Source: Botryllus schlosseri
Lineage: Eukaryota
Direction: 5' to 3'
NCBI GenBank assembly: GCA_051294905.1
Contig: CM119384.1
Location: forward strand, 15,128,001 to 15,192,000
Length of the DNA: 64,000 nucleotides
Part shown: in pieces, positions 789 to 44,449 of the stretch
Numbering within the stretch: the stretch's first letter is position 1
Layout of the letters: the number at the start of each line of letters is the position of its first letter
Made by a program: the position numbers and the translations under genes
Notes under the pieces: model-generated
What the model saw: only the letters and a program-made list of their open reading frames with translations
Told to the model about the DNA's origin: nothing
The model's database searches: none

Positions 789-3700
789 ATGTCGACTATG
801 AAAGATCTTGTTTCTGGTGCTTGTGGAGGCAGTAATCCTCTTGTGAAAGCCACCCAGCATGTTAAACAAAATATGGCATTTGGTCCTGCCGGAGTTATGA
901 GAGGAAATAATGGTTTGTTTGGCAATTTTTTTAACCAACTTGCCATACTTTCGTTTGTTTGCCTGCCTTAGGATTTTGCTATCTGCTGATGTATTCCTGG
1001 TAAACTACATGCATAGGCGGTTAGGCGTAGCCATGACCATGATGAACATTCACGATTACATTCAACAATTTTTGTGAGCGAAAGTTCTTAGTAATCATGT
1101 GTTGTCACAGTTCGATTGTGATGTAGTTATATCAGGTGACATCCAGATGACATCGCAATGCTGACAATGTCGGTGGAGGTAGAGGCTAGGGATGGTGTGA
1201 ACACGAGGTTCACGTTAATGTTCTGTGTTTGAACCTCATAAATTTATAGGTTCTGGACTGTGAACCTTTTACATATTACAATTTAACGTCAGAAGGTCTT
1301 TACATATTACAATTTAACGTCAGAAGGTCTTTGGTTGAATTCCTTTGCATTCGTTCAACTTCAGACCTCTATGCACGGCGCTAGCAGCAAAACGAAAAAT
1401 CAATACTATACGAGCGATTACCAGTGAACTCGGCCCTCGTTGAACTTGGCCCTCAGGCCCTCGAACAATTTTGCATTGAAAATGCATTTAATATGAATTA
1501 TGATTCTTAGATAGGGAACGTGCCGTGGTAGATCTCGCAGTGCGAGAGTCTGATATCGAAGACTCCACCACGCACGCTACCGGTTCACCATGATTGGTTA
1601 CTGGAATTATCGAATGTAAACATGGAATGGCAACGACCGATTTTGCAGCTTTGTTCCGCCTCGCTGAGGCTGTATTCAGAATTGTTTTTTCGTAAACGGC
1701 TGTAGGATTTCTGGCAATTCAGAATCTTCCACTTCCAGAGGGCAGAATTTACTGAATCTGGCTTTATCAAAAGCTACTGTCGCACTGATTCCGAAAATAT
1801 AAATGAATATATGGTTCTCTTTTCAGATTTCCAAAATATGGTAACCCTAGATATCATTCTTAGGAAATATCCTTGTCAGGGCACCCTAACTTGGACCCTA
1901 ACCCACTACCAACCCTAATATCCCCCTCCCCCAACCCTAATGTCCCTCCTCCCCTAACCCTAATCTTGGGATACCTTAACCCCAACTTGAACCCTAACCC
2001 TAATATCCCCCCTTCCCCAACCCTAATGCCTCCCAACCCTAATATCCTCCGCCAACCCTAATATCCCCCCTTCCCCAACCCTAATACCCCACTCCTAACC
2101 TGCAATTGCAATAACGAGCAGACCATGCGTGGTTGATATATGTGGGAGTCGCGTTATCTCCCGCGCTTACGCAATCCGTGATCATGTGATATAATCACGC
2201 TGTGACTTCGTGATCTACGCATGCCCTGACCTCCGTACAATATTGACAAATCCCTTGATAATAATATTATTAGTTTGATAATTCATATTAATAGTTGTTA
2301 ATACGCTATAATACAAAATTTCCAGAGGGCCGAGTTTGTGGGGCTGAATTCACCGAGGGCCGAGTTCACTGGCAACCATACGAGCATGCACCTTGGCAAT
2401 TTCAAAAATTTAACTTGCTTTGTTACAAAGTTTGCTCGAAATATCCAGCTTTTCGTTTGTGAATATTTTGTCAGCTTGAATCACACAACATCCCGAACTA
2501 AATTCATTACAGGTAGTCAGCAAATGATGCTCATTCGACTAATCGATGAGATTGATGTAAAAAATACGTGAATGCCTGATCGCCCTGATGTAAAAATCTA
2601 GCAGGCATATACGGGAGCCATCTTGATTTGATATGTTTATTGTATCATAAGAACCAAATCCGTGCATTTTGGGTGTTGGCTACTGTATAACTTGTTTATG
2701 GGGTAATATCGGTAACAAGTGTAGGAACCCGGTTTACACTCTACGCATTACACTGGTCAACACATATTTTTAGGCAGACAAAGTAGAGTGGTTTGGGGTG
2801 TTCTGAAGGGCACTGATTCCGAATATGACCTTAGTTTTTTTCAAATTGGCTCTTGTTGTGGAGATAACTAGGGCTGGGCAAAATCGAGTACTTGAGTGAT
2901 TCTATTCTGAATCACGTAATATGCTTCGAGTCGAGTCGAGTAATCGAGTATCAATCATTATGACGTCACAACTGGATGTGACATGTCGAAGTCCAAATAT
3001 GAAACTTTTATGCCACCACAAAGAACGTAATGCATGTTATCCATCACATAGATGCTTTGGTATTTTTTTCGACCATACCGATTTCATTGCACTTCTTAAC
3101 AATTTTGTTGGATGATGCTGACTTTGGAAATGTGTTATTTCCAGTAACGTTCATAGTTTTAAACTGTGCCTGGTATGCTGAAACACGGCCAATCAAGGTT
3201 TCACGGCTTCCTCAGTGGAAAATAGTATCAAACTATAATTCTCGTCAGTAAATTAACTTTCAGTTGCCAGGACCGTATAATTTCAGTACTCGAAAAAATG
3301 GTCTTTTACTACTCGACTCGAATCATTAAAATTACTACTCGAATCAGATTCGAATACTCGAATCATTTTGCCCAGCCCTAGAGATAACCCATGAGGCTAT
3401 TTTGACCAAAATCTCCCATTTTCGCGGTTATGACTTGATATGAAATCGGCTCAGTCGTACTATAAAGTTTCGAAATTCCATCTACTTGTTATTTTTACAC
3501 ACAGAAGACTCTTTTAAATCAAAATACAGCAACAGCACTATATTTAGGGGTAATAGATTTATCATAGTTACAGACTTTCATGGGTATCATGTACATGAAT
3601 AAACTTCAGTCATGTATATAAGTATTTACCTAGATACTAAAATAACGTGGCATTAATTCAAATAATTTTGCGTCAACCACCTATTGTAAATTCGAAATAA

Positions 3701-6700
3701 TCAGTTGGAGTATAATATTATTATTTTTATTTTAAAGCACAATTGTTTTTTGTACGATATTCGCCTGTAAGCTATTTAGTGCAGTTTCTCGAAAGGTTCC
3801 GGCAATGGTCTGCCATATAGTATGTTCAATTGTTCATCTCATCTGTCCTGATATCTTTCATTTGTTGTTCTGATGTCTTGGTAGAACCTCTTCCCTTGCC
3901 AATCAACAAGTTGATCAGGAAATATATCAATATGACTGAAGAGGAAGTGAACTTTTCTGCTTATGTTTGTGCCGAAGTTTTCGATATGCAGATACCAATA
4001 CTCGGACCAACTGTTTGTAGTTGGGTGCTTTGTGATCATATAAAAAGTTTTTATTTACTACATCTTAGGAGAAATTACATGCAGTGAACTCCTTCCTAAT
4101 GCGAAAATTAGAATCTTTCATCGGTATTCGAATATACCAGATACCAGATTCAGGCTTCTCGTTCGATAGGGTTACTAGGTATACCGTACCCATTTTGTTG
4201 ACTCAGCGGAAAATAATCCATTTACCAGTCGAAAGAAATGAGACGCATATGAGTATTGTAGTTGAGCTTTTCAAGGACAAATTTTATAGTTTTATACTCT
4301 TCTTTAATCTTGGTAGAATGACCAATTGATACAGGAGAATATGTATTTCCGTTGTGCAAAAGTACAATTTTTAGGCTTCACAAACTGCTTTTTTGACAAA
4401 CAAATATTTTACATCATGTCATGTTAATATTTATAGAATGACTGAGAACAATTTGAGGGTTCTTCCTACTAAATTATCTATTTATGCGCAGTATAAAATT
4501 AGAAAAAACTGCGATTTTCTTCCTACCAAGTGAAATATTCAAGCGTTTTGAGCCTTTTTCGGGGTATAAATATCTTCCGACAAAGAGCCAATCTGACAAA
4601 ACTAGTGTGATATTCGTAATCAGCAACCTCAAAAACCCTAGAAACGGCTCTGAGATGTTCTGCTTAAAAATATTTTTTTCGGTTTGTTGACCAGTGTTAT
4701 CAATATACCAATAGTCAGACGCTAAATGCATTGTCCTACCTGACCTACACCGTTAAGGCGTAAGCCTATCTTCCCTTGCAGGTCCTCGTTGAAATTGTTG
4801 GCAAAGTGACGGAAGACATTGATTTTAAGGGATTATTATAGCATTTGATTGTTCCGATAGATACATTTGCTGACATTTAAAAAGTCAGCATGTACCACAG
4901 CAATGTGGAATAATTTGGCCGAGTCGTCGCAATCTACTGTTCATATATTAATACATCACTAAACTGAAATGTAGGGTTGGCATTTGCAATATGACTTCAC
5001 GTGACGTCATGGGTTCACGTTCACACAAAACCTTTCAAAGAAATTCGCATTCACACGAACCTGAACCTTTCAGGGGTTTGCACCATCCCTAGTAGAGGCC
5101 CTATTGACTACTCCAAACAAATCGGTATTGTTCAACCCGATAATGCTGATTTGGTGCGTCTCGCAAACTTTTTCCTTGTGGCCCCGGAATTTTTTTTAAT
5201 TTCATTATGGTCCGTCACGACTTTGAAACCAAACATCCCAATGATAGGCATAGTTTAGTGAGGTTTTTGGAGTCCACTGTCAATGATGCCTACCAAATAA
5301 CGTTCACCCAGTGACATTTCAAAACAGAGAACCACTCGAAGAAGCGGAATTTATTGAGGATTGCGTACTCAATGTTGTCAGTTCATGTGTTTTGAAGTAA
5401 AATGAAATCGGCAAATCTACAGTTCCCTACTCTCACGTTTCTATTTTGTTTTAAGCATTGAATTAATCAAAACCAACGTTCATTCAAAATTTTTAAACAT
5501 AGGTTAACGAGAATAACCATAAAATATCATTAATTATGATGTGTAGGGGTTGTAAATTTTATTAAAATCTGCATACATTAGCATATAATCTCCGTTTCTT
5601 GGATCACAAGCCTTTTGTTTTGACATTTTCGATTTTGGCATATGATCCTAATTATTCTATAGTGCGACCCACGAACCTGTGACAAATAAATTTTGATTTT
5701 GTATGCAGTCCCTTGCTCACAAAAGTTGAATTTATGACATCACAATGAAATGAAGTTTATTATTGTGTGATGATACGGTGCGTCTCCACCTGGGATGCAA
5801 GATGTTTGAAATCAGGCTGATATATCGTCAAAACAGTTCTGAGCAATTCCTTCAAGTGCTGACGAGAATTTAAGGACATTTTCGAAATTTTCTTGGCCAA
5901 ACTCTGCACTCTGCAGTTATTGCTAGCCTTTACAATACAAATCAAAGAAACATATTGGTATTCACCATTGCTAGCCCGGAAATGATTGCGACATGCGCTG
6001 GCATAATTAATAATTGAGTTCATTGTTGAACACAATGATTTATCATTGATTGATGACCAGGCATTCATTGTTGCGGGTGAAACGTTTACTACAGGGTTAG
6101 AAATTTGCAACAGTAACTCTCGAAATCGTGAACTCGATTGCGAAAGTTACAATTGCGAATTTCCAACCCTGTAGTGCCACCAACCCCGTTACTTTACAAG
6201 TCTTGCTTAAACCATAAGGAAAGAAACAACCACGCATAATCCTCTCTAGCAAAATAGCGAAACACTTGTGCAATCAATTTTGAGAGCCACTATCAAAGGC
6301 TGAATAAGCCGCAGTTTGCCCAACCCTGCTAACTGCTATCTGCGGTTATTGCTCATATATGTATTATTGTATAACTGTTATGACGATTTCAATCATCAAT
6401 ACAATTCGAATTTTTCAGATAGTCATGGTGCGGGTGATTCGAGACTTGATGGTTCAGCTGCTGGCTTCCATCATACCTTCCACATGGGAGAACTATTACA
6501 TCAAGCCAAGCAGCTCGAAGAAAGGAATAAGGAATCTCAAGGTTGGAAGGCATTTCCCCAACGTTTTCAGCCATTCATTTATTCTGTGTTTGTAGATCCA
6601 CAATTTGTAACTGCACCAAAGCAATGGAAGAATGACTACCAAGGTTTCCAACAAACCGCTTATGAAGATAATCCTCAGAAACAAGATACCCGTAACCCAT

Positions 6701-9700
6701 CTGGAAGCTTTTCGATGCAAGGTACCATGATTCTTTTCTGATGGTATGTTGTCTCTAGGTTAACAAGCACATCGCACATGATTAGCAATATAGTGTGCTA
6801 CTGCCCTTGTTTGCTGTGATTGCCTCTTCCGTCATGTAGTTTTACTCTCCTAATTGATAGCTTAATTTGACTTATCTGTATTTCTAAGATCAATATACCT
6901 GTGTCTCGACTCTAGCAGACATTTCTGAAATCCATCAAACTTATGCAAAGGATTTAGCCAAAACCTGTCAGTTTCTCAGCGTTGTGAGGTACCAATTTTT
7001 TTTGTTTAGATGTGAAGCAGGCGCCTGGCATGGTATGGCCCCCCATATTCAGACCACCGGCTCCATCAGCACTACTCGGTGGGCCTAATATCCGGGAGGT
7101 TCACCACCCTATCTCAGAAGAATGGTAAGAAACTGATAATGCTATGTTTCTTTCAAGTTGATGTGTTCCTATGTTGTTTTATTCAACTTAAAGTTGATAT
7201 TTATGACTGCCTCATTCCTGGCATCAAGGAAATTCCTGCAAATCTATCATTAGGGCTTTTCAGAATTGTTGGTTTGCCTGATTCAATTTAGAGCAGTGGT
7301 TCTCATACACGGGTCTGTGGCACGTTTCCTGCCGGTCCACCCAATATATTGGGATTTTGTATCTTTATTGCAAAGCCAAGAAGGTGGACGCTTGTCAATT
7401 ACCGTAATTTAAGAAATAAAACATCTAATTTTAAATTTATTTAGAACTGCGGGATATTTTTCTGCATGGTGTCGTAATAGAGATTTCATAAGAATATCGG
7501 CCTGTTATAAATGAACATTGTAGTAAAAAAACACCATGAATACCACAAACAACAACAGACGAGAAAGGGCGTCTCCAATCAGCAATTCATCTATTTTGTC
7601 GAACACAAAGGGATTGTGAGGAGGTTGCGGTGCGGCAATTGTTTGCTGATTATAACGATAAATTGGTCTGGATTGCTGCATTTTCCGATCAACGTTCGCA
7701 AAGTCTTTGGAGGAAAGAATGAATTTCAATCTCACTCATACGCAATAACGCACTGTCGGATTCCACGCTCCAATCAATATGATTGTGACGAAAATCTGGC
7801 TCACGAATTGTGAGCATAGCAACGTGGCTTAATGGCGCAAAACAATTTAATTTGGGGTAGGGGAATGTGAAATTACCCTTCTAATCTTGAGAATATAAAG
7901 TGTTTGGAATATTTGGAAAATTAAATACGAAAGTGTAACATTTAAAACGTCTTTGCGACCCACCTGAAATAGCTTGGCGACCCACCGGTTGAGAAGCACT
8001 GGTCAAGTTTTCTAGTATCGTTCGTTATGACATGATCCAAGTTAGAAAGAAGAGAAAAGTTCGAATACGTTCTTTTCGACCACAAATACTCCATTGCTGT
8101 TAACTCTTCAAAACAAATAGTTTTGTGTTTGTTGACCATGACATAACCTATTGTGACTGCTGGATCACAATACCTGTCGTTTCCACAATCATGTGACGAC
8201 GCTCAGAGCCCAGCTACTCCAACATTTATTTTTTATTAACTATCAGCATTCAGCCCAGTGAATGACTTTTAATGCTTTGTATTACCCCATGTTATTTCAT
8301 GTCGCCGTTCTATTTTCCATGAACATTGCAAGACTTGAGCCACTGCTGTAAAAATGTAAATTATTCGTATTGAGCCATTCAAGTCCAAAATCGCTACCCT
8401 GATGTTGAATGAAGAGAGGCTTCAAGTACATCTGCATGAATACATATTTGGGTCATCATTATGCATATATTGGTTAATCTTGACAATAATGATGTCATTT
8501 TGAGCTCAGTGACATATTGACATTTGAATATGTTTGATTATGTTACTTGAATGTTACTTAGTAATAATAATTTTATTTCTACTAGGTATGCAATTTTAAT
8601 AACCGATATACTATACTACTTTAGGTCAAAAGATTATCAAGTTGAAGATAATGAACCAGGAATACTCGACAGCAACACTTCTGAGGTGAAGGGTCAAACA
8701 TCTTCAACAGCTGGTATGTACAAACTAGCAGCCCATTTCCTCTGTTATTCATTTATTCAATATAACTTTTCAGGCCTTGGATCAGAGAAGAATGATGCCT
8801 GGACTCGGCAATTGAACGACGTAAGTTTCACAATAAATATTACTCTATCTTTTATTAGGGAACCACAATATATTTGACTGCAGCGTTGAGTGTTTTATAT
8901 CCTTGCTGCGTTACACTTGGCACCAATTCTTAACTCGACTAACAAATAAGATGACTAAAATGAACTACAAACTTAAATTTTCAAGATTTAATCAGAATTT
9001 TTAGTTTTGGCATCCAGCTCCTGTTCATTCCATCACATTGCGTTTTATGTATTGCATTGTACAATGTGCATTGCGTGTGGATGAAAAGAATAGAGCTGTT
9101 AATTGCAATTATTTTGATTGATTTACATTTTCAGCCTTTGAACCGAATGAGGTTTTCCGGGGTGTGTCAATGAATCTTACACTCTGAATAGGATTGAAGT
9201 TTTGTTATCACATTTTCTTGGTGATGAATAAGATGACTGATTGTTCGACAAGAGATCAATTCATCGCTTCCTGTCACATTGCATTGTAGCCCCACCACAT
9301 GCCACGAGTTTTCAATCTGAGGTTTTGTTGATTTTTCACATCCATTCTTTTCGTACCTTCTTGGCAGTGGTTTATCCAGTTGAGGGTCGACATCCCTCCC
9401 ATTCCAAACTTGAAACCCCATACTTTTGAAGGTTACCAGTGAATTCGGCTCTCGTCAATTTGCCAGCTGATGTTGAGCAGACCCAATCATGGAAAGTATA
9501 GGTCAAATTCACCAACCAAGTGTGTGCCAACAGAGTTTGTGCAACATCTAAAAATAGTAAATTGAGCTTGACGCTCTCTTCACCCCTATTATTCGAAATT
9601 TCATGCCGCTGAAATCGTATCTTATGATAGGTTTGTTGATATACCGAAACAATGTTCTTTCCAATTCCCTACTAGTTGCTGACAATCGTCCCTGACGAGT

Positions 9701-12700
9701 GTCAGCTGAGAATAGAGGCTTCATCTCCATATACTATTCAATTGTATATTGAAGTTCTGCACCTCCAAGAAGCCCTTCAAATTCAGCATCTCAATAACAG
9801 ATGTATTAATCGATAGCAATATGTGGTTCTGGAGGGTATCAATAGTATGTGCCGAAAGTATGATTAGTCTCTTGCAAGCAATCCAATTGATACAGTACTA
9901 ATATACGGCTTCCGCAAGGAACAGAGTGCATGCTCCACAAAATATTTAGTATCTTTGTGATTAGAACAATAACATTTATTTCTAATTTTAACAAACTACC
10001 TACTGTACCCTTAAAGCATGACATACGGTAATGAAATTTCATGACCTAATCTGCGCTATGCCCTGATCTAACCTCACCACTAGCCTAATCCTTGGCCATA
10101 CAAACCATAGGCCCACACATAACCCAACGATTGGTCCCCGACAGGACATGATCTCTCACCCAAACTAACCTCAAGCCAACCAATCGGGTTACTTCGCTGG
10201 TATTTGAAAATGAACAAGTTAGATTTAGAGTGTTATAGAAAAAATTATACTCCTCTCTGGTATCTAGTAAAACGGCAAGATAGCGTAATGATGAAGCGTC
10301 CGTCTTCCTAATCGGTAGGGGGTGGATTCGATCCACAGTAGTGTCAGACCAAAGACCTGATTTGATTAGTAACACTGGTATCCATGACTTCCCCGCTTGG
10401 CGCTCATGCATTACAGTGGTAGCGTGGAGGGGGTGGTGCAAGACGTGAAAAGCCGTACAAGTCTACATCTGTACCTTCCTCGTCCTGCGGCATATGCACA
10501 TCATGCACTCATGGTGTCCATATACACAGATCGTGTGTATGTATATCATGAGTCGGTGTATATGCCGCATAAACATCTAGGACAAAAATAAACTACATCT
10601 TCCCGTCACTGGTATGGGTGACATGATAGCATGGATTGCATAATTTCCTTGGCAGGTTGAAGATCACGTCAACGTATCGCATGAACCCTCTCCATCTGAT
10701 CTCCTTGGATCCGTATTGGCACTTATGGAAGAACTAGAATCGATGGAATCATCGGAAGACGAATCTGATAGCGCAGAAGATGAGGATTCTCAGACAGTGA
10801 GGAAAATTACGCATCGTCACTGTCTAGATGGGTGGATATTTGTCATCAAACAATATATATATTCGTTCTCCCTTCTAGAATAAAACTGAATGCAAATAAC
10901 AAATGTCGCTTTGTCAATGGAAATAAGTCGATGCTAAGTTTGTTCTACGGTGTCACTTCAATAGTTAATTCTGCTAATCATCAAGCCAAATATAGGAATA
11001 AAAGAGCAATACGTGAAATATTTTTATCAAGTTGATCTGCCATGCTCTGAGAAGGCCAGTGTCGTAGTTTTACCTGTTTACTTCAGGGTCTACCTTATCG
11101 CTTCCAAAAGGATAATCCGTATCTGGACATGAACACGGAAGATGCCTTTGAAAAGGGAATGGAATATCTAAAAGTTTACGATACCGTAAACGCTACCTTG
11201 ATGTTTGAAGCTGCTTTGAATACAAATCGTCAGAACGCAAAGGTAACGTATGGCTTTCATTGTGATTTTGAGGATATTTCAAAGTAACAATCTCAATCTA
11301 ATCCTACAGGCTTGGCTGCACCTCGGTATGGCACAAGCCAAGAACTTGTACGTTTATGACGCTCTCAGAGCTTTTCGAAAGTATGGTTTAAGATTTGTGT
11401 TTTTTGAGTCACTATTTCCATATTCACTACAAAGATACATGCTTGATATTGCATCGTACTATTCATCGTATAATGGTTCCCACATTAATCTCAGCATATT
11501 CGCTTCTCTGTGTCACTGTGTGGGCTGCATCTTGTCCTTGAAATGTCTATTTATATTATTATTACATGCGCCTTTCTGTTATTCTCAACTGTTGAGCCTA
11601 CTTTTCAAATTTTGCGGAGTCAGATTGCAGGCAACAACTCTTCTATGATGCTTAGTGTTTTTAGGATATATAGAGACATGTGTTACGTAATCGCTATACA
11701 GTTGCCGTGCGGATGGTTGAGCCTGTTGCCTGATTAGGGAGATAATTTTCGCTTGAGTAAATCAGTGAATCTTCGCTAATTATTTTGTATGTTCGATATG
11801 GTGAATTGTTCGATAGTAATATGTTACCTTTATTTTGCAGCTGTTATCATTATGACCCAAACATGACGGAATCACTGCTTGGTGTGGCGTCAGTTCAGCA
11901 AAGTCGTGACAAGGATGCCACATGTATGGCTTTGATAGAATGGGTAAAAGTTCATCCGAAATACAAGCATTTGAAGGCAGATAACAAGACACGAATTGAA
12001 CTGGCATCTAGCAGCTTGTCTCGTGGGAATTATTATACGAATTGGTAAGAACGTCTTAATAACTGTTATGTATTAGGACAGTGGTTCTCAACCGGGGTTA
12101 ATATATAGTTCTATTATAATTAGTGTTAGAGCTACTCTCAAGAGCTCAATATCACTAATTGGCAATTACTAGTCGCTTGTATGTGGCTACAAATTAAGAT
12201 ACTATCAAGTAAACAGGTGTCCAGCTTAGAACAGGTTTGAAATTTTTCAAATCTATCGAGGTAACCATCCATTTATTAGGGTTAAGTACGTATGTCCCGC
12301 CTGCCTAGAATGCAAGAATCAGACCAGCTTCCTTGTGTTGATGAACTTACGCAAATACGCATACAATGTAAATTACCCGGAATAATCTCAATGTTCGCGC
12401 GTATCACAATATCACGTCCATGAGAAGCAAAGATGAAATTTCGATCTCCTACCGGATCAGACCAGAGACTCGAAAACTGGTGTCTGCTGCTATCTGGCTA
12501 GGTGCTCAGTATTCACGGATAGCGTGGAGGAGAAAAAAAACGGGGGTGCAGACTAGATGACGTTACGGTCGTATCGCATCTTCGTCGTCAAAAGCATCTC
12601 AATGGTGCAGGCCAAAACGAATACACCTCTTTCTGTGCTTCCAGGCCTTTTATTTAATTTGGTATGAATGTTTGTCGATAGTATTTCTGCGGGATTTTAA

Positions 12701-15664
12701 TTCCCAAGAAAATGCCCAATTTGTGGAACAATATGCCAACCACTCAACTAGAGCTGGTCGAAGTTGTCATCCTTGGCACTCCAGGATAAGTAGAAGTAAC
12801 AATGTATGTAAAAATTCGAAGTACTCTAGGTCTATTTTTACCTAAATAACTGGAAACTCTTTTTGTAGAAATTTCCTTTCCTACCTGTACTTGAAACGGT
12901 CGATATTATCCGAAACGAAATCTGGCAGAAATGCTGCAAAACTATCTGGTAATACCATGCACGTGGAAGTTGGCTGTCAACGTTCAGTACACTTCAATTA
13001 CAATCAGTTTGAAAAGATACCGAGACAGACAAAGCGTGCCTGTTATCCCAATCTGGTCTTGTCTTGCCAGAACTTGTTTTTCAAGCATCACAAAGGACTC
13101 ATTTTCATTGCAGTCGCATGTTCAATGAAACTGAAGGCCTGCTAGTTCAAGCGTTACGATTGAATGAGGAAAATCCCGATCGGGATGTGCTGAGCGCTCT
13201 TGGGATGCTCTACAACTTGGGCTGTGAGCACGACAATGCAATTGACTGCATCCAGGTATGAAGACATAGAAATTTATTTATGTTACGCTATAGTACAGAA
13301 TCAACATCAGATTCATTTTATTAGAAATTTCATCATTTCTCCATTAGCACATGAATTTTGAACTAAAATTATGCTAGTGATATAATGTAAGAGTATGCAC
13401 ATTGTACACTTAATGAGAAGTCGTTTCGAGGAATATCAAAAAATGGAGTATTGATGAAATGTGTTTTCAATTCTTGTAACATTGGTCACAGCCATATCAG
13501 CCTAATTCTGTTGACTATTATTTGCCTTAAGAGAGCTGATACGTTTCCTCCTGGTAGCGACTTGTTTTCTTCCGGTTAATAGGTTTCCAATAACTGACAA
13601 TCTCTTTAAGATGGCTCTCTCGATGAATCAAGACGATCCTGTCATGTGGAACAAACTCGGCGAAACATATACCTGTTGTGGAAACTATGCACAGGTAAAC
13701 TTGATTCGTAATTTTCTTTTGAACCAAATCCTTATGATGTTACTTCCCACTTGATTTCAGGCGGCTCATGCTTTCAAGAAAGCTTTGGAACTTCACCCGA
13801 ATTACATAGAAGCAATGTACAATCTTGGGTCGTCTTGTACATATCTGAAATGTTATCGGTATGTTTGCAATTGTTATCTAGTTATACCAGAGGTGACCAT
13901 ACCAGAGGTGACCAAACTGTGCCCACGGACCACCTGTGGGTTGTATACTTGCCGTTGTTCTGAGACCCCCTATAGGGCGGTCAAACTAACTCCCGGGAGA
14001 CTTCGTCCCACGTCTTCTATGGGTTATTTCATCACCAACTGTTATGCATACAATTGCACTCACCTTGTCTATAACTAAGCGTTATATATTATGCAAATCA
14101 CGAACGATCCAAACTAACAACGTATTTTGTCAATAATATTGTAGGGTTACCATATTTTAGAATCGGGAAAGGACGACACCTTTTCAAAATTTAACACTGA
14201 AATGTGGTTGGTTGACTAAAAAAAAGTCAACTTTCCGGCTCAGCTCCTCGGTGGACATTTTCAAAAACCTCAAAGGAGGACGTATGGTAACCCTATAATA
14301 TTGGTACTGGCTTGCATCACTGCATGTATTGCTTTTAATGTTTTATTTAGTCTGACCTCATCTGATCAGATTTACCGGTAGAGCTGATGGAGGTGATGTG
14401 TGTATTTAGGGTAACTAATTAGACGTCTGTAGTCATGTTCACGATTACCGAGGTTTTGCTTCCTATATATTTCGGCGTTGCAAACGGATTGCGCTCCACA
14501 AGAATTGCAGAATGCAGATGAATGTTGCGAGTGAATTATTTAGAATTAAGAAAGCTCTCCTTAGTTACTAACATGCTATGATTAATATTTTGAAGTTGAG
14601 GTTAAAACGTCATTGGATGGAAACTCTTTACATCCAAGTTTTGTGAATCATGTATGAAAGCCGCTATCCTCTGGATGCTAAAAGCCTGCATTTGTATTCT
14701 ACCATCTTAAAAATTGATACTGTGTCTTTTTGGGGGAACGATTGAATTTTCTAACGAAAAAAACTAAACATTAGCGGGAGGTCATACACTTCGATTTAGG
14801 CAACACCAGTGATGTTACATAAATTTGAAAGTAGGAGTGTCTCGAACATACATGGCTACTCCAGTAACAAATATTATATTTATTCTGGAATTCACTCATC
14901 ATTCATAGCTGTGATTAAGTGGAAGTTGAAAATAGGACTGATGAAAGAGAGTCTTTATTTTCATCCAACCAAAATACATCAAAAAAATACAGACGGCAAT
15001 GATGGTGGTACAGAAAATATGCATGCACAGCATTCAGTATCAGATAAGAATGATTGATACGACCGTGAAGGTCGATACAGCCCGGAGCCCACAGATCCGT
15101 TACAATTTTGAAAATCAATATCGATACGACCGTGAAGGTCGATACAGCCTGGAGTTCACCGATCCGTTACAATTTTGAAAATCGATACGACCGTGATAGT
15201 CGATACAGCCCGGAGTTCACCGATCCGTTACCATTTTGAAAATCGATATGACCGTGAAGGTCGATACAGCCCGGAGTTCACCGATCCGTTACCATTTTGA
15301 AAATCGATACGACCGTGAAGGTTGATACAGCCCGGAGTTCACCGATCCGTTACAATTTTGAAAATCAATAACTGATTCGTGCCATTTTCTCATGCTGTAC
15401 CAAAACTAATTGCATTTCTTCCTTTTATACAGGCAGGCCATGGTACATCATCTGACCGCCATCAGTCTGCAACGTAAATACGGAAAATTCCTTCATACGA
15501 CCAGTGGAGAAAAGATACAATACTCTACAATGTGGGAGGGTGTGAGAAGGATGGGGCCTAAAGTTGGTGACCCCCGAGTGGAGAGTGCCGCTGAACGGAT
15601 AAATTTCGAAGAGATGTATCGAATCGTTGTTATGGACCCGTCATGGGTCATGAAAAGTCAGTGA
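789..15664 (+). CDS. Divergent PEX5-like peroxisomal import receptor paralog (TPR protein), 14 coding exons, ~569 aa
   Basis: Exons read from sequence with GT-AG ends and consistent phases: 789-912, 6419-6541, 6596-6721, 6916-6988, 8625-8713, 8774-8820, 10656-10796, 11087-11242, 11310-11380, 11841-12044, 13114-13255, 13611-13694, 13761-13858, 15433-15664 (sum 1710 nt, no internal stop). PEX5 hallmarks: MSTMKDLVSGACGGSNPL, HTFHMGELL, WKNDY, YRFQKDNPY..AFEKG..LMFEAAL, AWLHLG, LGMLYNL, MWNKLG, ALELHPNY..YNLG. Extra N-terminal micro-exons cannot be excluded. Confidence 0.85.
1267..1330. repeat. 31-bp direct tandem duplication
   Basis: CTTTACATATTACAATTTAACGTCAGAAGGT occurs twice head to tail. 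Confidence 0.8.
1417..2378. mobile_element. Composite non-autonomous element with inverted ends and an internal CCCTAA-rich repeat
   Basis: TTACCAGTGAACTCGGCCCTCG (~1418) is inverted relative to CGAGGGCCGAGTTCACTGGCAA (~2356-2377). It contains a foldback-family fragment (1620-1805) and CCCTAA/C-rich units (1880-2100). A related end occurs at ~9431. Confidence 0.6.
2869..3380. mobile_element. hAT-type MITE (512 bp)
   Basis: TIR TAGGGCTGGGCAAAAT / ATTTTGCCCAGCCCTA; perfect 8-bp TSD GAGATAAC (2861-2868 and 3381-3388). Confidence 0.9.
9640..9785. repeat. Interspersed repeat family with GCTGAC..GTCAGC hairpin
   Basis: Similar copies (CTACTAGTTGCTGAC...GTGTCAGC...GTTCT.CACCTCCAAGAAGC) at ~36470-36600, ~36650-36730 and ~51025-51150. 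Confidence 0.7.
10279..10480 (+). mobile_element. tRNA-derived SINE (diverged subfamily)
   Basis: Head GATAGCGTAATG...GGATTCGATCC (A-box and B-box-like), followed by the GTCAGACCAAAGAC...CTTGGCGCTCA body shared with the SINE at 22801. Confidence 0.65.
12455..12625 (+). mobile_element. 5'-truncated SINE copy
   Basis: Matches the body of 22865-23030 (CCAGAGACTCGAAAA...CACGGATAGCGTGGAGGAGAAAAAAAACGGGGG.GCAGACTAGATGAC...TGGTGCAGG). Confidence 0.8.
14142..14295. mobile_element. hAT-type MITE (154 bp)
   Basis: TIR TAGGGTTACCATA / TATGGTAACCCTA; perfect 8-bp TSD TAATATTG. Confidence 0.9.
15056..15366. repeat. Minisatellite, 5 x ~61 bp
   Basis: Unit GATACGACCGTGAAGGTCGATACAGCCCGGAGTTCACCGATCCGTTACAATTTTGAAAATC, near-identical copies, in the last intron of the PEX5-like gene. 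Confidence 0.95.
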
Positions 15665-17678
15665 TGCTCTTGCAAGGACTCCGACAATGTTAATATTTTC
15701 TGTTGAGGTGGAATTTTCATGTGCGAATGCCAACTCAGTTGGACATTGAATGAATTTTTGGTATCGACATAGCTGGACGTATCATTAGCGACTACTATTG
15801 GTTGTCCGGTAATTGAAGCCTGCCCGTCTAGGATGAGTACTCGAGTAGTGTGATTGATTGGTCTATTGCACATAACCAGGGCTATTTTACATTGAATATT
15901 CATGCTACCAATGATGCTGTAATGTCTACGGACAGATTAATGGGAATTAATATCGCAGGCTTGTTACTTGCTGATGGTACTATACTTGACTCCACTACCA
16001 GTAGTACATATATATTTGCTTGAAGCCATGTCTACTTGAACCATGAGTACTGCTCTTCCATGCTTGGGTACTTATCACAAATTACAGCTGGGCAGAATCG
16101 CGTGCAGAGTGCTAGCCCGAGTCTGGTACTCGGGTAGCCTACGACTCACTAAGTCTCCATTACAGACTTGGAGTGTCCAAACGATTAATTTTTGTGTGAC
16201 CACGAAGGGAATAGCAAATATTAAATTTATTGCAAGTCTACAACCTCTATACAGAAATTTAGTTGCCATTCTGCTACATGCATTGAATGATATGGTACTG
16301 CCCTGCGTGCGTATTGGCGTTCAAGGTACCCACAGTGGGAGGAAAGTATCGCAACCACAATTTTTGTTCATGAAGCAAAAAGGAGCATATAATTTCAGTA
16401 CCCGAAAATATCGGCTTCCCGGCTTCCACTACGTGGTCGCCCTTATCCCTTGTGTTAGATTTGTATTATGTAGTACACCACTGTGTTCTGTATAGATTTG
16501 TATTATGTCGTATATCACTGTGCTCTGTAAAGTTTTGTTATTGGTTGGTGCGACCTTGAACTTTATCGCAAAATTATGATATGTTCAGGGTAATTCTTTT
16601 CCATCTCTGAGGTGGAAATTTCCAAATTCTGGTAAGACCAACCCATTATCCACTGTGTGTGATGACTTCATCAAATATTATGCCGTCGATGTTTCTTCGT
16701 AATGAAATGTTATTGTGGAATTGTGTATTTTTTAGTAATCTTTGACTGGAAGGGGAGTAACGGCAGGAAAATACAGTTTTGTTGCGAGACCGAGGTGTGA
16801 AGTGTATAAGAGTAAGAGTGCTTGCCGATTCAACGACTCCATAACAGTAGTGCTACCATTATAGGGTTGTAAAATTATGCCATTGCTGTGTAAATACTCA
16901 TCAAAAACATGTATGAGGCTACGGACGATTACGACCCGATATAGCCGACGTATACGATATGGGATGGTTGGAACCCTCAAAATAGTCGGTTCAACAGCTA
17001 CAGCACCGTACGTAGATATTTCGTCAAAGTAGCTATATTTTCAATTGTCAATGTCGTTCGACTATGACATCACAATTGAATATTCGTAATGTGGCCTTAA
17101 AAAACATGATTTTGGCCTTCTTTTAAACGTGCCTGTTTTAATGTAACCCTAGTTATACCATACGTCCTCTGTTAAAAAGATTTGTCCTCTTTCTTTCAAT
17201 AAATTGAAAGTGTCCTCAGAAGACGCCTAAATGTCCCCCTATTTTTCAAGAAAAAGTCTTGAAATGCAGGGTTGTAACCAAGTCACAAGTCAATCTCACT
17301 TATAGTTTTGACTCGAGTCAATTTCAATTCACCACCTAGTCAAGTCCAAGTCACGGAGAAGAGTGTCGAGTCCAAGTCATTGTCTTGACTGATCAGTTCC
17401 GAGATAGTGTCATGTGAAACCCACTTTTTACAACTCTGCTCGGTGATGTCGATAGCTTCGCATTCATAATATACTAATTTTCATCACTTTTAACAGTTTT
17501 TGGTAACATTTTCAAGTACCAGTACTGTAAGCCTAAACTAAACCGCCCTGGCGCGTAAGGCCTAATCGCGTCGAGCAAGTGGGACGGTGAAGATATCGTG
17601 CCATAAATTTTGTCAGCGTGTTAAGAAACCATGACGAGCTGTCGCGGGCCCGCGGCAACTGGAGCGTGAAGGTCCTGT

Positions 17679-19636: not shown

Positions 19637-21938
19637 CAAGCCTGGGCAAAGTGCGGTCCGCGGAGCTATTCTGTGTGACCCGCGAAAGGTTGCTTGAAAT
19701 TGAAAATATAAAACCTACTTTTTAATGTTGCTGCGTAGACTAAAACCATAGGATGTATAAACTCAACCGGAAATTCGTTTACTATCAAGCCTATGTACAT
19801 TAACATGCCACGATGACATGCAGCCTATTCGTACCTCACATGCCTAATCCAAACTAAAAAAAAAGTCAATATAGCAAATTATGCCGTTACAATTAAATTC
19901 ACAAGCAGTCACCAAACCTTCTTTGTTGTCATTGTCACATTACACGGTCTGTGTTCCAAATTGTTACGTGATGCGTTTCCAAATCCCTAACTCGCAAAAC
20001 AAGTCAATCAGTGCCCGTGATTTCTATGAGTATATCACCACCCAAAAAGGATGTAAAAAAAAAGCCGAAAGTTGTAATTCAAAGAAGGTTCGGGGGACTA
20101 AATATTTGTTTACTGGTGAGGGGTAAACCCGTCATTTTAGTAGTTAGTGCCGAGCACGTCGCCGTGTTTAAGGAGTATGTAATTTAAGTCGGTTCGATGA
20201 CAAAAACACGAAGACTTACACTCGGTCAAAGGACGGCGAATTTCGCAATAACTGCAACTGCAAGCTTGACGCACCCCAAATCCCCCAATTGGGGGCGAGC
20301 TCGAAGGACGCCCAAAATCATTTCGTGAATGAACAAGGGCTGTTCAAAAATAACTTTTTCTTCTGGATTCCCGCCATTCAGGCATTAAATTGTCAGGTTA
20401 CCCTGAAAAACGCTGCTCACCAAATTTGGTTCAATTCTATCAAGTATAAGGCTCTGCAGATCCAATAAAAAAATTTAATTTATAATGAAATTTAAAAAAA
20501 ATTGGAGTCTTTCGTTGATATTTCTCGGATTATCGTTGATCGGTGATAATCCGAGGATTATCAACGAAAAACTCAAATAAATCCGCTTCTACTAGTTGGA
20601 ATTGACTCAAATTTGTTTTGCATCGTCTTTGAAGACAGCTCAACAATTTCGTGGGGTCGACAGAAAACTTTTAAAAAATTTTTTTTTTAATTTTTCATTA
20701 TAAATTAAAAATTTTAATTCGATCTGCGGAGCCTTATACTTGATAGAATTGAACCAAATTTGGTGCGCAGCGTTTTTCAGGGTAACGTGGCAATTTAATG
20801 CCTGAATGGCTGGAATCCAGAAGAAAAAGTTATTTTTGAACAGCCCAGAGCATTTTTTTGAAAACTTATGCAACTTGTTTCAAATTTTTCTCTCGCTATA
20901 CGCGCGATTTGGAGATCAATGGTTTATAGAATTGGGCATTTCGGCGTCAGCCATTACCGCGCCACGACGCACCAAGATATATGAATGTCAGGCCAACACG
21001 GGATTACAAGAAGTCATTGCAATTCCAACTGCTCATCAAATTGACTTGGTAAAGGGGAAAAAATTCGACAGCGAGAAACTCTTGGCCGAAAAGGAATGCC
21101 CTTATGTTGACCGAAAACCACCATGTCCAATTGTCCGTCCATCTCCATAGGCATTCCTATTGGCCAAGCCAGTGAAGAAATACCAATTGGGAATCGTGTG
21201 CGTCTTTTAGTTTAGTACGATTAGGCGATTTCAATATCTTTTCACATAGTAGACGGGAGGTCACGAAATAACAAAATATAACGAAGTAATTATACCAACG
21301 GGCCCTCCCGAATATCTCCAAGACAGCACCTCACTCAGCTCTAGGGGTAAAACTGAGTACGTGGGCTGAGAGAGGTTAAAAAATATAGCAATATATATGC
21401 AATTACTAATGTTATTGACCGATTGAATCATGAATAATGGAAAAATTCCACGCTTCGCGCGATTAGGGCTGACAATGTTGCCAATCAGTGTATACAAGAA
21501 ATCTCGCTCAGAAGTAGTGTCAAAAACGTGCATCCCGATGGGTCTGGTCTGGGAGGCGATGCCCCCAGAAGTTTGGTTTATAACTCTATGGGGCGGGCCA
21601 AGACCAACGTTTGGGAGGGGGTTGACGACGGGCTGACACATTTAATGTATTGATAAAAAAAAAACGCGGATAGGGGTTTAAAGAGAGTTCAAAAGGTATC
21701 ATGTTTAACATTGTTTCAAAATATGACGGCAAATAAATATTTTTTTGGTGATTAACCGTCAATTTCTCATTCCCCAATATCAACACATCCACTGAGCACC
21801 ATTTAGTGTAATTCACTGCTTTCAATTTAGAAATAAAACCAATACGCTGTAAAATACAGCTAAAATTTTTGACTCGGCCCGCCAACATATTTTCTGCTTC
21901 TCATTTGGCCCGCGGAGAAAAATAATTGCCCACCCCTG
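19637..21938. mobile_element. 2.3-kb non-autonomous hAT (Charlie-like) element
   Basis: Ends CAAGCCTGGGCAA..GCGGTCCGCGG and GGCCCGCGG..TTGCCCACCCCTG; perfect 8-bp TSD CCCTATAC (19629-19636 and 21939-21946). Confidence 0.75.
20337..20846. mobile_element. Long inverted-repeat (foldback/MITE) element nested in the 2.3-kb hAT element
   Basis: ~150-bp arms, GGGCTGTTCAAAAATAAC... / ...GTTATTTTTGAACAGCCC, plus an internal inverted segment at ~20505-20575. Confidence 0.8.
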
Positions 21939-22800: not shown

Positions 22801-23057
22801 TGATAGTGTAATGGTTATGCGTCCGGCTTCTCGAGCGGTAGGTCGTGGGCTCGATCCCCGGCCGGGTCATACCAAAGACTCGAAAATTGGTATCCGCAGC
22901 TATCCCGCTAGGCGCTCAGCAATCACGGATAGCATGGAGGAGAAAAAAAACGGGGGCGCAGACTAGATGACCTCATTGGGCCGTATCGCAACTCCGTCGT
23001 CAAAGCATCTCGATGGTGCAGGCGAAAAAGAATATCATATCTCTCTCTCTCTCTCTC
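22801..23057 (+). mobile_element. Full-length tRNA-derived SINE ending in a (CT)n tail
   Basis: TGATAGTGTAATGG (A box), GGCTCGATCCC (B box), tRNA-like head, body shared with the copies at 12455 and 10279, CT tail at 23040-23057. Confidence 0.8.
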
Positions 23058-23342: not shown

Positions 23343-23932
23343 TATAGAAATTAAACATGGAACGGCAACAACCGATTTTGCAGCTTCGTTCCGCTTCGCC
23401 GAGGCTGGAGTAGAGAATAGTTTTGCGTAAGCGACTGTAGGATTTCTGGCAATCCAAAAGCTATCTTCCCGAGCGCAGAAATTACTGAATCTGGTCTTGA
23501 TCGAAAGCTACTGTTACACCGATTCCGAAAATATAAATTATAATATTGATCAGGCACTGATCCACCTAGAATCTGTCCTCCAAGTCTGAAATATCGGCAT
23601 TGTTCAGAACAATCGGGCAACCGCAACACAATGGCCATAACAATGACCCGTTACGACCCTCCGATTGTTCGAACAATGCCGTTATTCAGACTTGGAGGAC
23701 GGATTGTAGGTGGATCAGTGCTTGATCATTATTTTAATTTATATTTTCGGAATCGGTGCAACAGTAGCTTTCGATCAAGACCAGATTCAGTAATTTCTGC
23801 GCTCGGGAAGATAGCTTTTGGATTGCCAGAAATCCTACAGTCGCTTACGCAAAACTATTCTCTACTCCAGCCTCGGCGAAGCGGAACGAAGCTGCAAAAT
23901 CGGTCGTTGCCGTTCCATGTTTAATTTCTATA
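23343..23932. mobile_element. Foldback element type A (~590-bp palindrome)
   Basis: ~270-bp near-perfect inverted arms; flanking direct repeat (TA)CTCTAAC of 7-9 bp; arm fragments also at 1620-1805 and 28175-28320. Confidence 0.85.
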
Positions 23933-24110
23933 CTCTAACCATAGTGTTCTAAGGAACTATGCTCTAACATCCACCTCGGCCTAGAGTGCCCGATGTCACA
24001 GTTCTTTTTGATGTTGATCTCTTTGAAGCCGCGGCCCTTTCTACTAGTTCTTTTCCATTCATTGTGAGTGCTTTCTTTCGTCGGGTGCTTCGAGTGCTTT
24101 CTCATCTCTG

Positions 24111-25095
24111 ATAGATACGCTACACCCGTCGTCACGCTTGCTTGCTTGGAGGTAATTACTGCTCAGCAATCTGAACGCAACGTAATTTCCAATCCCAAAG
24201 CTGACGACCCGAGCGCTCAAATTGGATGAAGTTGATCTTATTTGAAAGCTACTGTCGCACTGATTCCGAAAATAAACATTAAAATCTGATCAGGGCAACC
24301 GAAACCCCTTGAAATACACCTCAAAGTCTGAAAATCGGCATTGTTCTGAGCAATTGCAGCCATTGTCATGGTCATTGTACTGCGTCGCTCCAATTGTTTG
24401 AAACAATGCCGATTTTCAGACTTTAAAGGCTATTGCGGGCTGGTTCCATTGCCTTGATGAATGTTTATTGTATATTTTTAGATTCAGCGCGGCAGTAGCT
24501 TTCAAATAAGATCAACTTCATTTAATTTGAGCGGTCGGATCGTCAGCTATGCGATTGGCAATTACGTTGCGTTCAGATTGCTGAGAAGTAATTACCTCCG
24601 AACAAGCAAGCGTGACGACGGGTGTTGCGTATCTATCAGAGATGAGCATGGATTAGGATTAGGTTTTGAAAAAACAGGATTTGTGAAATTTTGTCGCATT
24701 TGGATTGGATTTGGATTAGACATTTTTTCAGAACGGATTAGGATTTGGATTGGATTTACCTGTTTTCTGGGAGATTGAAATGTCGTCTGGCGAATGGCGA
24801 CAAGCTTTATTCAGATCAGTTATTAATGTACTTATGGTTACTAAGTTATCTTGAATCAAGTGAATCGTTGGTTGTGAAAGAAAATTTTCGAATCCCTCCA
24901 TTGCATAAATTAGTATTTTTTCTGAATTTCCTGTTGGAATCGGATTAGGATTGGACATGGACTTGAATATGAAAAAGTTAGGGATTAGGATTTGGATATG
25001 GATTTGAAGGTTCGGATTTGGATTGGATTAGGACATAGAAATTTCAAATCCGCTCATCTCTGGTATCTATCCGTAGGTTAGTTATCTATAGATGC
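24111..25095. mobile_element. Foldback element type B interrupted by a hAT MITE
   Basis: Inverted arms at 24111-~24345 and ~24390-24636; the arm resumes at 25063-25095 after the MITE. Confidence 0.8.
24637..25062. mobile_element. hAT-type MITE (426 bp) rich in GGATT repeats
   Basis: TIR CAGAGATGAGC / GCTCATCTCTG; perfect 8-bp TSD GTATCTAT; related fragments at ~18670-18725, 22380-22477, 23060-23170 and 40070-40232. Confidence 0.9.
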
Positions 25096-44430: not shown

Positions 44431-44449
44431 TGGATTTCATCGAGTAAAC

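Follow-up and report, generated by a model that had tools for sequence, protein, structure and literature searches.

A transcribed tandem paralog of PEX5 with a remodelled PTS1 groove in Botryllus schlosseri

What becomes of a duplicated PEX5 gene when the groove that binds peroxisomal targeting signals of type 1 (PTS1), normally the most conserved part of PEX5, is rewritten while the rest of the receptor is kept? This question is raised by a stretch of 64,000 nucleotides from the Botryllus schlosseri genome (assembly GCA_051294905.1, contig CM119384.1, positions 15,128,001 to 15,192,000 of the forward strand; hereafter the window, with all positions counted from its first letter). It contains two PEX5-like genes arranged head to tail, both on the + strand, the first of which (hereafter the paralog) precedes a canonical PEX5 by 10.8 kb. 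A preliminary description had interpreted positions 11087–15664 as a PEX5 paralog with a rewired cargo pocket. We found that this is a lineage-specific PEX5 paralog with a remodelled groove, and that it is transcribed, spliced, intact and selectively maintained. The earlier reading thus stood as regards a real, intact and spliced paralog with a rewired groove, but it had mapped two of the groove residues, N378 and E379, to the wrong motif.

Structure of the locus

The downstream gene, in which every pocket residue is as in human PEX5 and the frame of the tetratricopeptide repeat (TPR) domain is intact over 330 aa, served as the comparator.

26467–39129, + strand: canonical PEX5, start at 26467
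34186–34329, 34393–34463, 35692–35898, 36855–36996, 37283–37366, 37902–37999 and 38883–39129, + strand: TPR exons of the canonical PEX5

The interval 11087–15664 corresponds to the seven TPR-domain exons of the second PEX5 gene. Its borders had been placed exactly, with 11087 being the first base past an AG acceptor and the TGA stop codon located at 15662–15664, and the TPR frame is uninterrupted, as had been claimed: the exons comprise 987 nt, or 328 codons, and are free of stops up to the TGA. The gene is however larger than this interval, and our model of it begins at 789. Substitutions in the list below are given in the long-isoform numbering of human PEX5.

11087–11242, + strand: TPR exon a; TPR1, with FQKDN at the position of the FEEEN motif; 36% identity to canonical 34186–34329; covered by RNA
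11310–11380, + strand: TPR exon b; TPR2, with KNLYV (N382 kept, E383L, E385V); 71 nt as in the canonical copy; RNA junction
11841–12044, + strand: TPR exon c; TPR3, in which SVQQS replaces FTNES (N415Q, E416Q); RNA contig X2 record 11
13114–13255, + strand: TPR exon d; hinge and TPR5; junctions 12043|13113 and 13253|13609 in RNA
13611–13694, + strand: TPR exon e; TPR6 helix A, with WNKLGETYTC (N526 and K527 kept, A530E, N534C); RNA junctions
13761–13858, + strand: TPR exon f; TPR6 helix B and TPR7 helix A, with YIEAMYNLGSSCTY (R557E, N561 kept, N568Y); RNA junctions
15433–15664, + strand: last coding exon; TPR7 helix B, C-terminal bundle and TGA; RNA junction 13857|15432; 22% identity to the canonical copy
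15665–16397 and beyond, + strand: 3' untranslated region (UTR); the RNA contig of the TPR exons runs through it

All seven exons are collinear with those of the canonical copy. Their lengths are 156/71/204/142/84/98/232 nt, as compared to 144/71/207/142/84/98/247 nt in the canonical copy, so that four exons are of equal length, and the intron phases are identical. The matching lengths and phases indicate that the paralog arose by duplication at the DNA level and is not a retrocopy. Exons d, e and f matched PEX5 chains in the PDB, while the last exon is very diverged and was unrecognisable as PEX5 against the same database; the Pfam TPR matches were weak.

Transcription and splicing

Seven RNA-type runs from two studies contained 5–15% of the sampled words of 11087–15664, which is roughly the share of the exons, and four runs were mapped on 10500–16400 for contig and read evidence. 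A contig of 1658 nt from run X2 joins 11841–12043, 13113–13253, 13609–13691, 13758–13857 and 15432–16397 and extends 173 nt past 16397, and a second contig from the same run (record 10) joins 11136–11240 to 11308–11380 across a GT..AG intron. The six junctions observed in the TPR region were all of the GT..AG type and fell exactly at the exon borders that had been placed by homology. Spliced transcripts of the gene, for which the preliminary description had pointed to RNA data, thus exist. Some unspliced pieces were also present in run X1. The depth of raw reads over the exons was about 1–2 in two bulk RNA-seq runs, indicating that the expression of the paralog is low.

Divergence and selection

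The TPR domains of the two copies were 35.6% identical in amino acid sequence (114/320) and 48% identical in nucleotide sequence. Synonymous differences (pS = 0.85) were beyond saturation, the non-synonymous divergence (dN) was 0.64 and only 32.5% of third codon positions were identical; the GC content at third codon positions was 0.47 in the paralog and 0.66 in the canonical copy. When the canonical sequence was allowed to decay neutrally to the same divergence it acquired 14–18 stop codons, as compared to 0 in the paralog. Likewise, shuffled versions of the paralog coding sequence contained 19.6 stops on average, with 0 of 20,000 being free of stops, and the other two frames of the TPR exons contained 20 and 18 stops. 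Overall, some 18–20 stops would be expected had the paralog decayed neutrally. The scores against human PEX5 chains for exons c, d, e and f were 48.6, 54.8, ~35 and ~46 bits for the canonical copy, whereas the paralog yielded no match for exon c and 30.6, 13.4 and 32.3 bits for the others, indicating that the paralog is the fast-evolving copy and that the canonical copy has stayed close to human PEX5.

Polymorphisms within the TPR exons were mostly silent. Six of the nine listed variants were synonymous and three were non-synonymous (T17P, Q265L and P321Q), which over 204 synonymous and 780 non-synonymous sites corresponds to a ratio of non-synonymous to synonymous polymorphism (pN/pS) of about 0.13. 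The excess of synonymous changes was significant (p = 0.004–0.014), also when one further variant in exon d was counted as non-synonymous (p = 0.008–0.03). All three non-synonymous variants were located outside the TPR1–6 repeats, and the six listed variants inside the repeats were all synonymous. The coding part of the X2 contig showed 6 differences to the reference over 759 nt and no indel, as compared to roughly 15 differences over 733 nt and five indels in the 3'UTR, so that the coding part was about 2.5-fold less different.

These data support the conclusion that the paralog is under purifying selection and is not a pseudogene. A transcribed pseudogene, or a decaying duplicate in which the open frame is a leftover, would be in line with the low expression, the very fast divergence and a last exon that is unrecognisable as PEX5 and for which no homologue was found among 1.84 billion proteins. 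It would be difficult to reconcile with the absence of stops and frameshifts from 328 codons that have RNA support, and from the 621 codons of the full model, despite saturated synonymous sites, with six canonical junctions that are in use, and with the excess of synonymous polymorphism and the confinement of indels to the UTR. Decay, which the preliminary description had expected to appear as frameshifts or as a dN/dS ratio near 1, is largely refuted and we regard it as highly improbable.

The constraint was not evenly distributed over the TPR domain. Using position classes from the six repeats in TPR register, 56% of the core positions (4, 7, 8, 11, 20, 24, 27 and 32) were identical between the copies, a figure that is lowered by the B-helix of TPR3 being out of register, as compared to 33% of the positions on the concave face (2, 5, 6, 9, 12 and 13) and 30% of the remaining positions (Fisher p = 0.048). 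This indicates that the fold has been kept and that the groove evolves like any other surface.

Substitutions in the cargo groove

Residues were numbered from PDB chain indices with assumed offsets of +234 for 1FCH (short isoform) and of +334 for 2C0L and +311 for 2J9Q (long isoform), which reproduce the residue numbers of PMC3328432 and PMC1854907. According to the 2C0L and 1FCH indices, FTNES holds N415/N378 and E416/E379 (long/short isoform). ENEQE, which is QNEQE in the canonical copy, holds N382, E383 and E385, while WNKLG holds N526/N489 and YNLG holds N561/N524. The strings that had been quoted for the paralog (KNLYV, SVQQSRD, WNKLGETYTC and YIEAMYNLGSSCTY) are all present, as are their downstream counterparts. 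In the short-isoform numbering used at that stage, the retention of N489, K490 and N524 and the replacements A493E, N497C, R520E and N531Y were correct. The exceptions were the retention of N378 and the change E379L: both residues sit in FTNES and not in QNEQE, and both are Gln in the paralog. Three alignments agreed on Gln at position 415: one made with MAFFT, one to TRIP8b from phmmer, and one without gaps that was fixed at the Trp further on. The renumbering makes the case for a rewired pocket stronger, since the clamp residue N378/N415 is itself replaced.

In long-isoform numbering, which is used throughout the rest of the text, the paralog has kept N382, N526, K527 and N561 and has changed at eight positions (E383L, E385V, N415Q, E416Q, A530E, N534C, R557E and N568Y), and the acidic FEEEN motif is FQKDN. 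Three of the five groove asparagines are thereby replaced (N415Q, N534C and N568Y), and two new acidic residues have appeared (A530E and R557E). Out of seven conserved groove residues (N415, N526, N534, N561, N568, K527 and R557), three are retained in the paralog and all seven in the canonical copy. The segment GYIR(S/A)RYNLGISC(I/M)N is conserved between human PEX5 and the canonical copy. Exon e of the canonical copy, which human chains matched as well, contains a stretch of 10 residues that trypanosomatid PEX5 chains share without a single difference.

Roles in cargo binding have been published for residues of this groove. N415, N526 and N561 form conserved hydrogen bonds to the terminal carboxylate and the last peptide bond of the cargo (Fodor 2012, PMC3328432). 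Highly conserved asparagines hold the backbone of PTS1, with the 'invariant' N534 binding position -3, and the Lys at position -2 of the cargo occupies a negatively charged pocket (Baker 2016, PMC4900764). FEEEN corresponds to residues 326–330, and the closed ring with bound ligand is characterised by a salt bridge that links R557 to E383/E385 (Stanley 2007, PMC1854907). With R557E on one side and E383L/E385V on the other, the closed-ring salt bridge is lost on both sides in the paralog. To judge from these substitutions, signals of the SKL type are probably no longer recognised in the canonical manner.

The retained residues raise the alternative that the paralog is an ordinary but sub-functionalised PTS1 receptor, which would bind SKL via N526, K527 and N561 together with Q415 and would differ from its neighbour in expression or in its preference for PTS1 variants. 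Apart from these three residues and the chemical similarity of Gln to Asn at position 415, this is in line with the full PEX5 architecture of the gene model and with the division of PTS1 cargo among known PEX5 paralogs (PMC9133605, PMC8172628). It does not easily account for the replacement of N534, N568 and R557 by Cys, Tyr and Glu, for the loss of E383, E385 and E416 from the acidic side, or for changes within an exon whose 10-residue stretch is unchanged from trypanosomatid PEX5 to the canonical copy; moreover, changes of this scale have not been reported for Pex9 or Pex5a (PMC8172628, PMC9133605). We consider this alternative unlikely.

Several of the changes are towards the generic TPR consensus (YIEAMYNLG versus AEAWYNLG, and WNKLGETYTCCGNY versus W..LGEAY..QGDY), and exons e and f of the paralog scored best to designed consensus-TPR proteins. 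Such a shift would fit a relaxed constraint from the ligand as well as a new specificity. It is one of several observations that favour a ligand-free, regulatory PEX5-like protein, which would work through its N-terminal half and use the TPR domain as a folded scaffold, for example in docking, in a role similar to that of a PEX7 co-receptor, or as a competitor of PEX5 for PEX14/PEX13 or for the export machinery. Conservation in the groove does not exceed that of the remaining surface (33% versus 30%), the salt bridge that closes the ring has lost both partners, the FEEEN motif is gone as well, and the N-terminal Cys module is conserved more than any other part of the protein. Furthermore, the N526K variant of human PEX5, which has been described as a mimic of the cargo-bound state, remains an import substrate (PMC4900764), and Pex5a of Ustilago has an N-terminal domain that functions independently of the TPRs (PMC9133605), so that a cargo-independent role is credible. 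Speaking against it are the retention of N526, K527 and N561 and the finding that six of six polymorphisms in the TPR repeats are synonymous, which suggests a constraint beyond the obvious needs of the fold, although the numbers are small. A ligand-free function therefore has some appeal but appears rather unlikely.

Predicted N-terminal half of this paralog

Upstream of the TPR domain we predicted five additional exons, which our model joins to the TPR exons based on homology, splice consensus and closure of the reading frame.

789–912, + strand: predicted exon 1; start codon and N-terminal module with SGACGG (Cys12); homology
6419–6721, + strand: predicted exon 2; HTFxMxxLLxQAKQLE block, with WKNDY in the long form; alternative donor of the same phase at 6541
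7010–7124, + strand: predicted exon 3; WPPIF; its last two bases and the first base of the next exon encode the Trp of WSKDY
8625–8820, + strand: predicted exon 4; WSKDY junction, a PEX7-box-like FIQYNFSGLG, and AWTRQL; homology
10656–10796, + strand: predicted exon 5; acidic linker ahead of the TPR domain; AG/GT sites, in frame with both neighbours

The resulting in-frame model of 12 exons spans 789–15664 and encodes 621 aa, or 561 aa if the exon 2 donor at 6541 is used, with 0 internal stops. Both forms contain Cys12, WPPIF, WSKDY (encoded on either side of an exon junction) and AWTRQL, while WKNDY is present in the long form only.

Exon 1, which contains the Cys, is the best conserved part of the paralog. 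Positions 798–920 were 61% identical at the amino acid level to canonical 26473–26595, with SGACGG corresponding to SGECGG, and the donor position (G|GTTTGT) is shared. This is also the only repeat between the two genes at the DNA level, with 74% nucleotide identity. A recent gene conversion of the exon was considered and rejected, as the identity at third codon positions was only 42%, a value which indicates that the similarity reflects constraint at the protein level.

The other predicted exons were supported to a varying extent. In exon 2, 6424–6525 was 47% identical to canonical 27227–27328, and a small contig set with contigs of RNA-like size (X25, the run kind being uncertain) contained a fraction of 0.91 of the sampled words of 6405–6750, which fits the long form of the exon. 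A contig set registered under a second organism label, B (X26/X30), contained 84% of the exon 2 31-mers; it derives either from the same species under another label or from a very close relative that also bears the gene. Exon 3 was chosen among the enumerated open, Trp-containing candidates between exons 2 and 4 that change the phase from 1 to 2; its polypyrimidine/TAG acceptor is strong, its donor is GTAAGA and its inclusion closes the entire open reading frame (ORF), and we infer its assignment from these features. For exon 4, 8623–8829 was collinear with canonical 31120–31308, and the acceptor phase and the D|GTAAGT donor are shared. A contig from run X1, the kind of which is listed as 'RNA?', covers a position around 10714 inside exon 5.

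In PEX5, the N-terminal Cys is the site of the mono-ubiquitination that is needed for recycling and export, and the di-aromatic WxxxF/Y motifs in the disordered N-terminal half mediate docking to PEX14 and PEX13. The paralog possesses the Cys in exon 1 and two or three WxxxF/Y motifs in the predicted exons. As the Cys module is the best conserved part and the docking motifs are present, the paralog may still engage both the docking and the export machinery.

Relation to other PEX5 paralogs

The paralog resembles human PEX5 (PDB 1FCH, 2C0L, 3R9A) in having seven TPRs and a C-terminal bundle, the Cys module, WxxxF/Y motifs and N526/K527/N561, and it shares homologous exons, intron phases and four equal exon lengths with its canonical neighbour. 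It differs from PEX5 in the eight groove-region residues, the FQKDN motif and the unrecognisable last exon.

Another chordate PEX5 paralog with a possibly non-canonical function is TRIP8b (also PEX5L or PEX5R; PDB 4EQF), a subunit of HCN channels. TRIP8b keeps the groove asparagines and binds the PTS1-like SNL C-terminus of HCN; it is not known to have the N-terminal Cys or the docking motifs of PEX5, and it has its own core that binds HCN's cyclic nucleotide-binding domain (CNBD). The pattern in the paralog is the opposite, with the N-terminal half kept and the groove asparagines N415, N534 and N568 lost. Moreover, TRIP8b is a vertebrate duplicate and the Botryllus schlosseri gene a local tandem duplicate.

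Exon c nevertheless matched TRIP8b (4EQF, 21 bits) and no PEX5 chain, and the two have a PKYK(H/Y)L stretch in common, as would be expected if the paralog were the orthologue of vertebrate PEX5L/TRIP8b, descending from a split that predates the tunicates and belonging to the channel-binding branch. The per-exon scores showed no consistent preference of this kind: exon d matched human PEX5 and not TRIP8b, and exons e and f matched PEX5 equally well or better. In addition, the paralog contains the PEX5-type N-terminal Cys exon (61% identity to its neighbour) and WxxxF/Y motifs, it has SVQ where TRIP8b keeps the asparagine of YTN, the tandem arrangement fits a local duplication, and in a published phylogeny PEX5R is regarded as the product of a duplication in vertebrates (PMC8172628). 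We have therefore rejected orthology to TRIP8b, which is barely credible given the Cys exon, the WxxxF/Y motifs, the lost groove asparagines and the PDB scores, in agreement with the preliminary description. The shared stretch is located in the TPR3–TPR4 linker (11841–12044), where the paralog has HPKYKHL, mouse TRIP8b NPKYKYL and PEX5 (T/H)PAY(A/R)HL. This likeness is possibly due to convergence or chance, and exon c is the sole exon with TRIP8b as its first match.

Vertebrate PEX5R/TRIP8b and yeast Pex9 originated by independent duplications, and Pex9 no longer possesses the disordered N-terminal region and has kept PTS1 binding (Jansen 2021, PMC8172628). The paralog is likewise a lineage-specific and independent duplicate, but unlike Pex9 of Saccharomyces cerevisiae it keeps the N-terminal half, according to the gene model, and has lost conserved PTS1-contact residues. 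The closest functional analogy is provided by Ustilago maydis, with two full PEX5 proteins in one organism. The TPR domains of its Pex5a and Pex5b bind PTS1 with overlapping specificity, the shorter or diverged PEX5 uses the N-terminal domain as well as the TPRs for the choice of cargo, and no comparable loss of groove asparagines has been described (PMC9133605). A literature search identified no paper on a tunicate PEX5 paralog. As far as can be predicted from its sequence, the paralog represents a further independent PEX5 duplication, which unlike the other paralogs combines a PEX5-type N-terminal half with lost groove contacts.

Possible functions of the paralog

We think it probable, with moderate confidence, that the paralog is a functional, weakly expressed, full-length PEX5 protein that originated in an old head-to-tail tandem duplication and in which the PTS1 groove has been remodelled. 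According to this scenario, a local duplication of PEX5 would have yielded two copies, of which the upstream one evolved rapidly. It would have kept the parts needed for cycling at the peroxisome, namely the Cys module for export dependent on mono-ubiquitin and two or three WxxxF/Y docking motifs, and the TPR fold would have been retained while the ligand groove was rebuilt. The most likely consequence is that SKL-type PTS1 would no longer be bound with normal affinity, and the paralog may either import a narrow set of non-canonical cargo proteins or serve the import machinery as a partner or regulator that functions independently of cargo.

Several points weigh against this scenario. The five N-terminal exons are predicted from homology, splice consensus and closure of the frame, expression is low (depth 1–2 in two bulk RNA-seq runs), and the polymorphism sample is small, with 9 listed variants and at least one more in exon d. 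The approach of some groove changes to the TPR consensus suggests that the constraint from the ligand was lost rather than replaced by a new specificity, and Q415 together with the kept N526, K527 and N561 could possibly still clamp a free C-terminus and allow some binding of PTS1. Finally, no orthologue was found in a protein search with the last exon or in a metagenome scan with exon d. The protein search, in which the last exon (76 aa) was compared to 1.84 billion representative proteins, matched only an unrelated repeat protein and missed the query's own protein, so that the proteins of this genome seemingly fall outside the collection. As the last exon is unrecognisable as PEX5 it is a poor probe, and the blank result constitutes weak evidence. 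The metagenome scan, run with the aligned exon d sequences of the two copies, yielded one locus, L001, which encodes a generic TPR protein and not PEX5.

The preliminary description had also proposed a receptor for a non-PTS1 signal, with a specificity that might be shifted in charge. That the paralog carries cargo other than PTS1 proteins, or has such a specificity, can be suggested only tentatively. More specifically, it may be a cycling import receptor for an undescribed non-SKL C-terminal signal, in which Cys534, Tyr568, Glu530 and Glu557 in the groove replace the PTS1 contacts; this is conceivable, if somewhat improbable.

The described PEX5 paralogs (TRIP8b, Pex9 and Ustilago Pex5a) still bind PTS1-like C-termini. 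A paralog in which the shuttle parts are kept, the groove residues are replaced and purifying selection is ongoing represents a natural experiment on the use of the PEX5 scaffold beyond SKL, and could bring to light either a peroxisomal targeting signal that is new or an import regulator that is built in. If it recognises a new C-terminal signal, this would be a third class of cargo recognition of the PEX5 type, in a chordate. If it binds SKL normally, several contacts considered to be 'invariant' would be dispensable, which would also be informative. The naturally tolerated groove substitutions are, moreover, a resource for understanding how PTS1 specificity is encoded.

Repeats and other features of the window

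The window is eukaryotic, with a GC content of about 40%, and rich in repeats. Outside the two PEX5 genes, an intronless ORF is located at 44231–47293, encoding 1020 aa from the first ATG and a CBM21 protein according to the first reading; the gene-position collection has no entry for a 1020-aa or a 947-aa product.

One repeat family is present at 1608–1755 in intron 1 of the paralog, at 23343–23490 in the intergenic region and at 28168–28315 within a canonical PEX5 intron. This family accounts for a multi-frame 'homology' between 1606–1728 and 28166–28288, which is thus not an exon match. A dispersed repeat at 12441–12561, in a paralog intron, is 86% identical to an intergenic one at 22851–22971, and the area 12470–12666 had an RNA-type depth of about 1800 in run X1. 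In another paralog intron, a short element at 10500–10596 reached a word depth of about 5000 in X1, with hundreds of raw reads in X11 and X15; its loose ends enter poly(A) at 10596, and it resembles an abundant transcript of a retroposed repeat or one similar to short interspersed nuclear elements (SINE-like). No tRNA gene or tRNA-derived element was detected near the expressed repeats. The last intron of the paralog contains a tandem array of a 61-nt unit just before the final exon (15056–15370, 5.1 copies, 91% match), and the flanking segment at 14834–15030 showed high depth in RNA-type runs.

Four near-perfect, hairpin-like inverted repeats were found in the intergenic region and in a canonical PEX5 intron (23343–23932, 24101–24646, 29786–30282 and 20337–20846). 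Their arms are 165–260 nt long with 85–99% complementarity and are separated by spacers of 26–180 nt, and they look like foldback elements or miniature inverted-repeat transposable elements (MITE-type).

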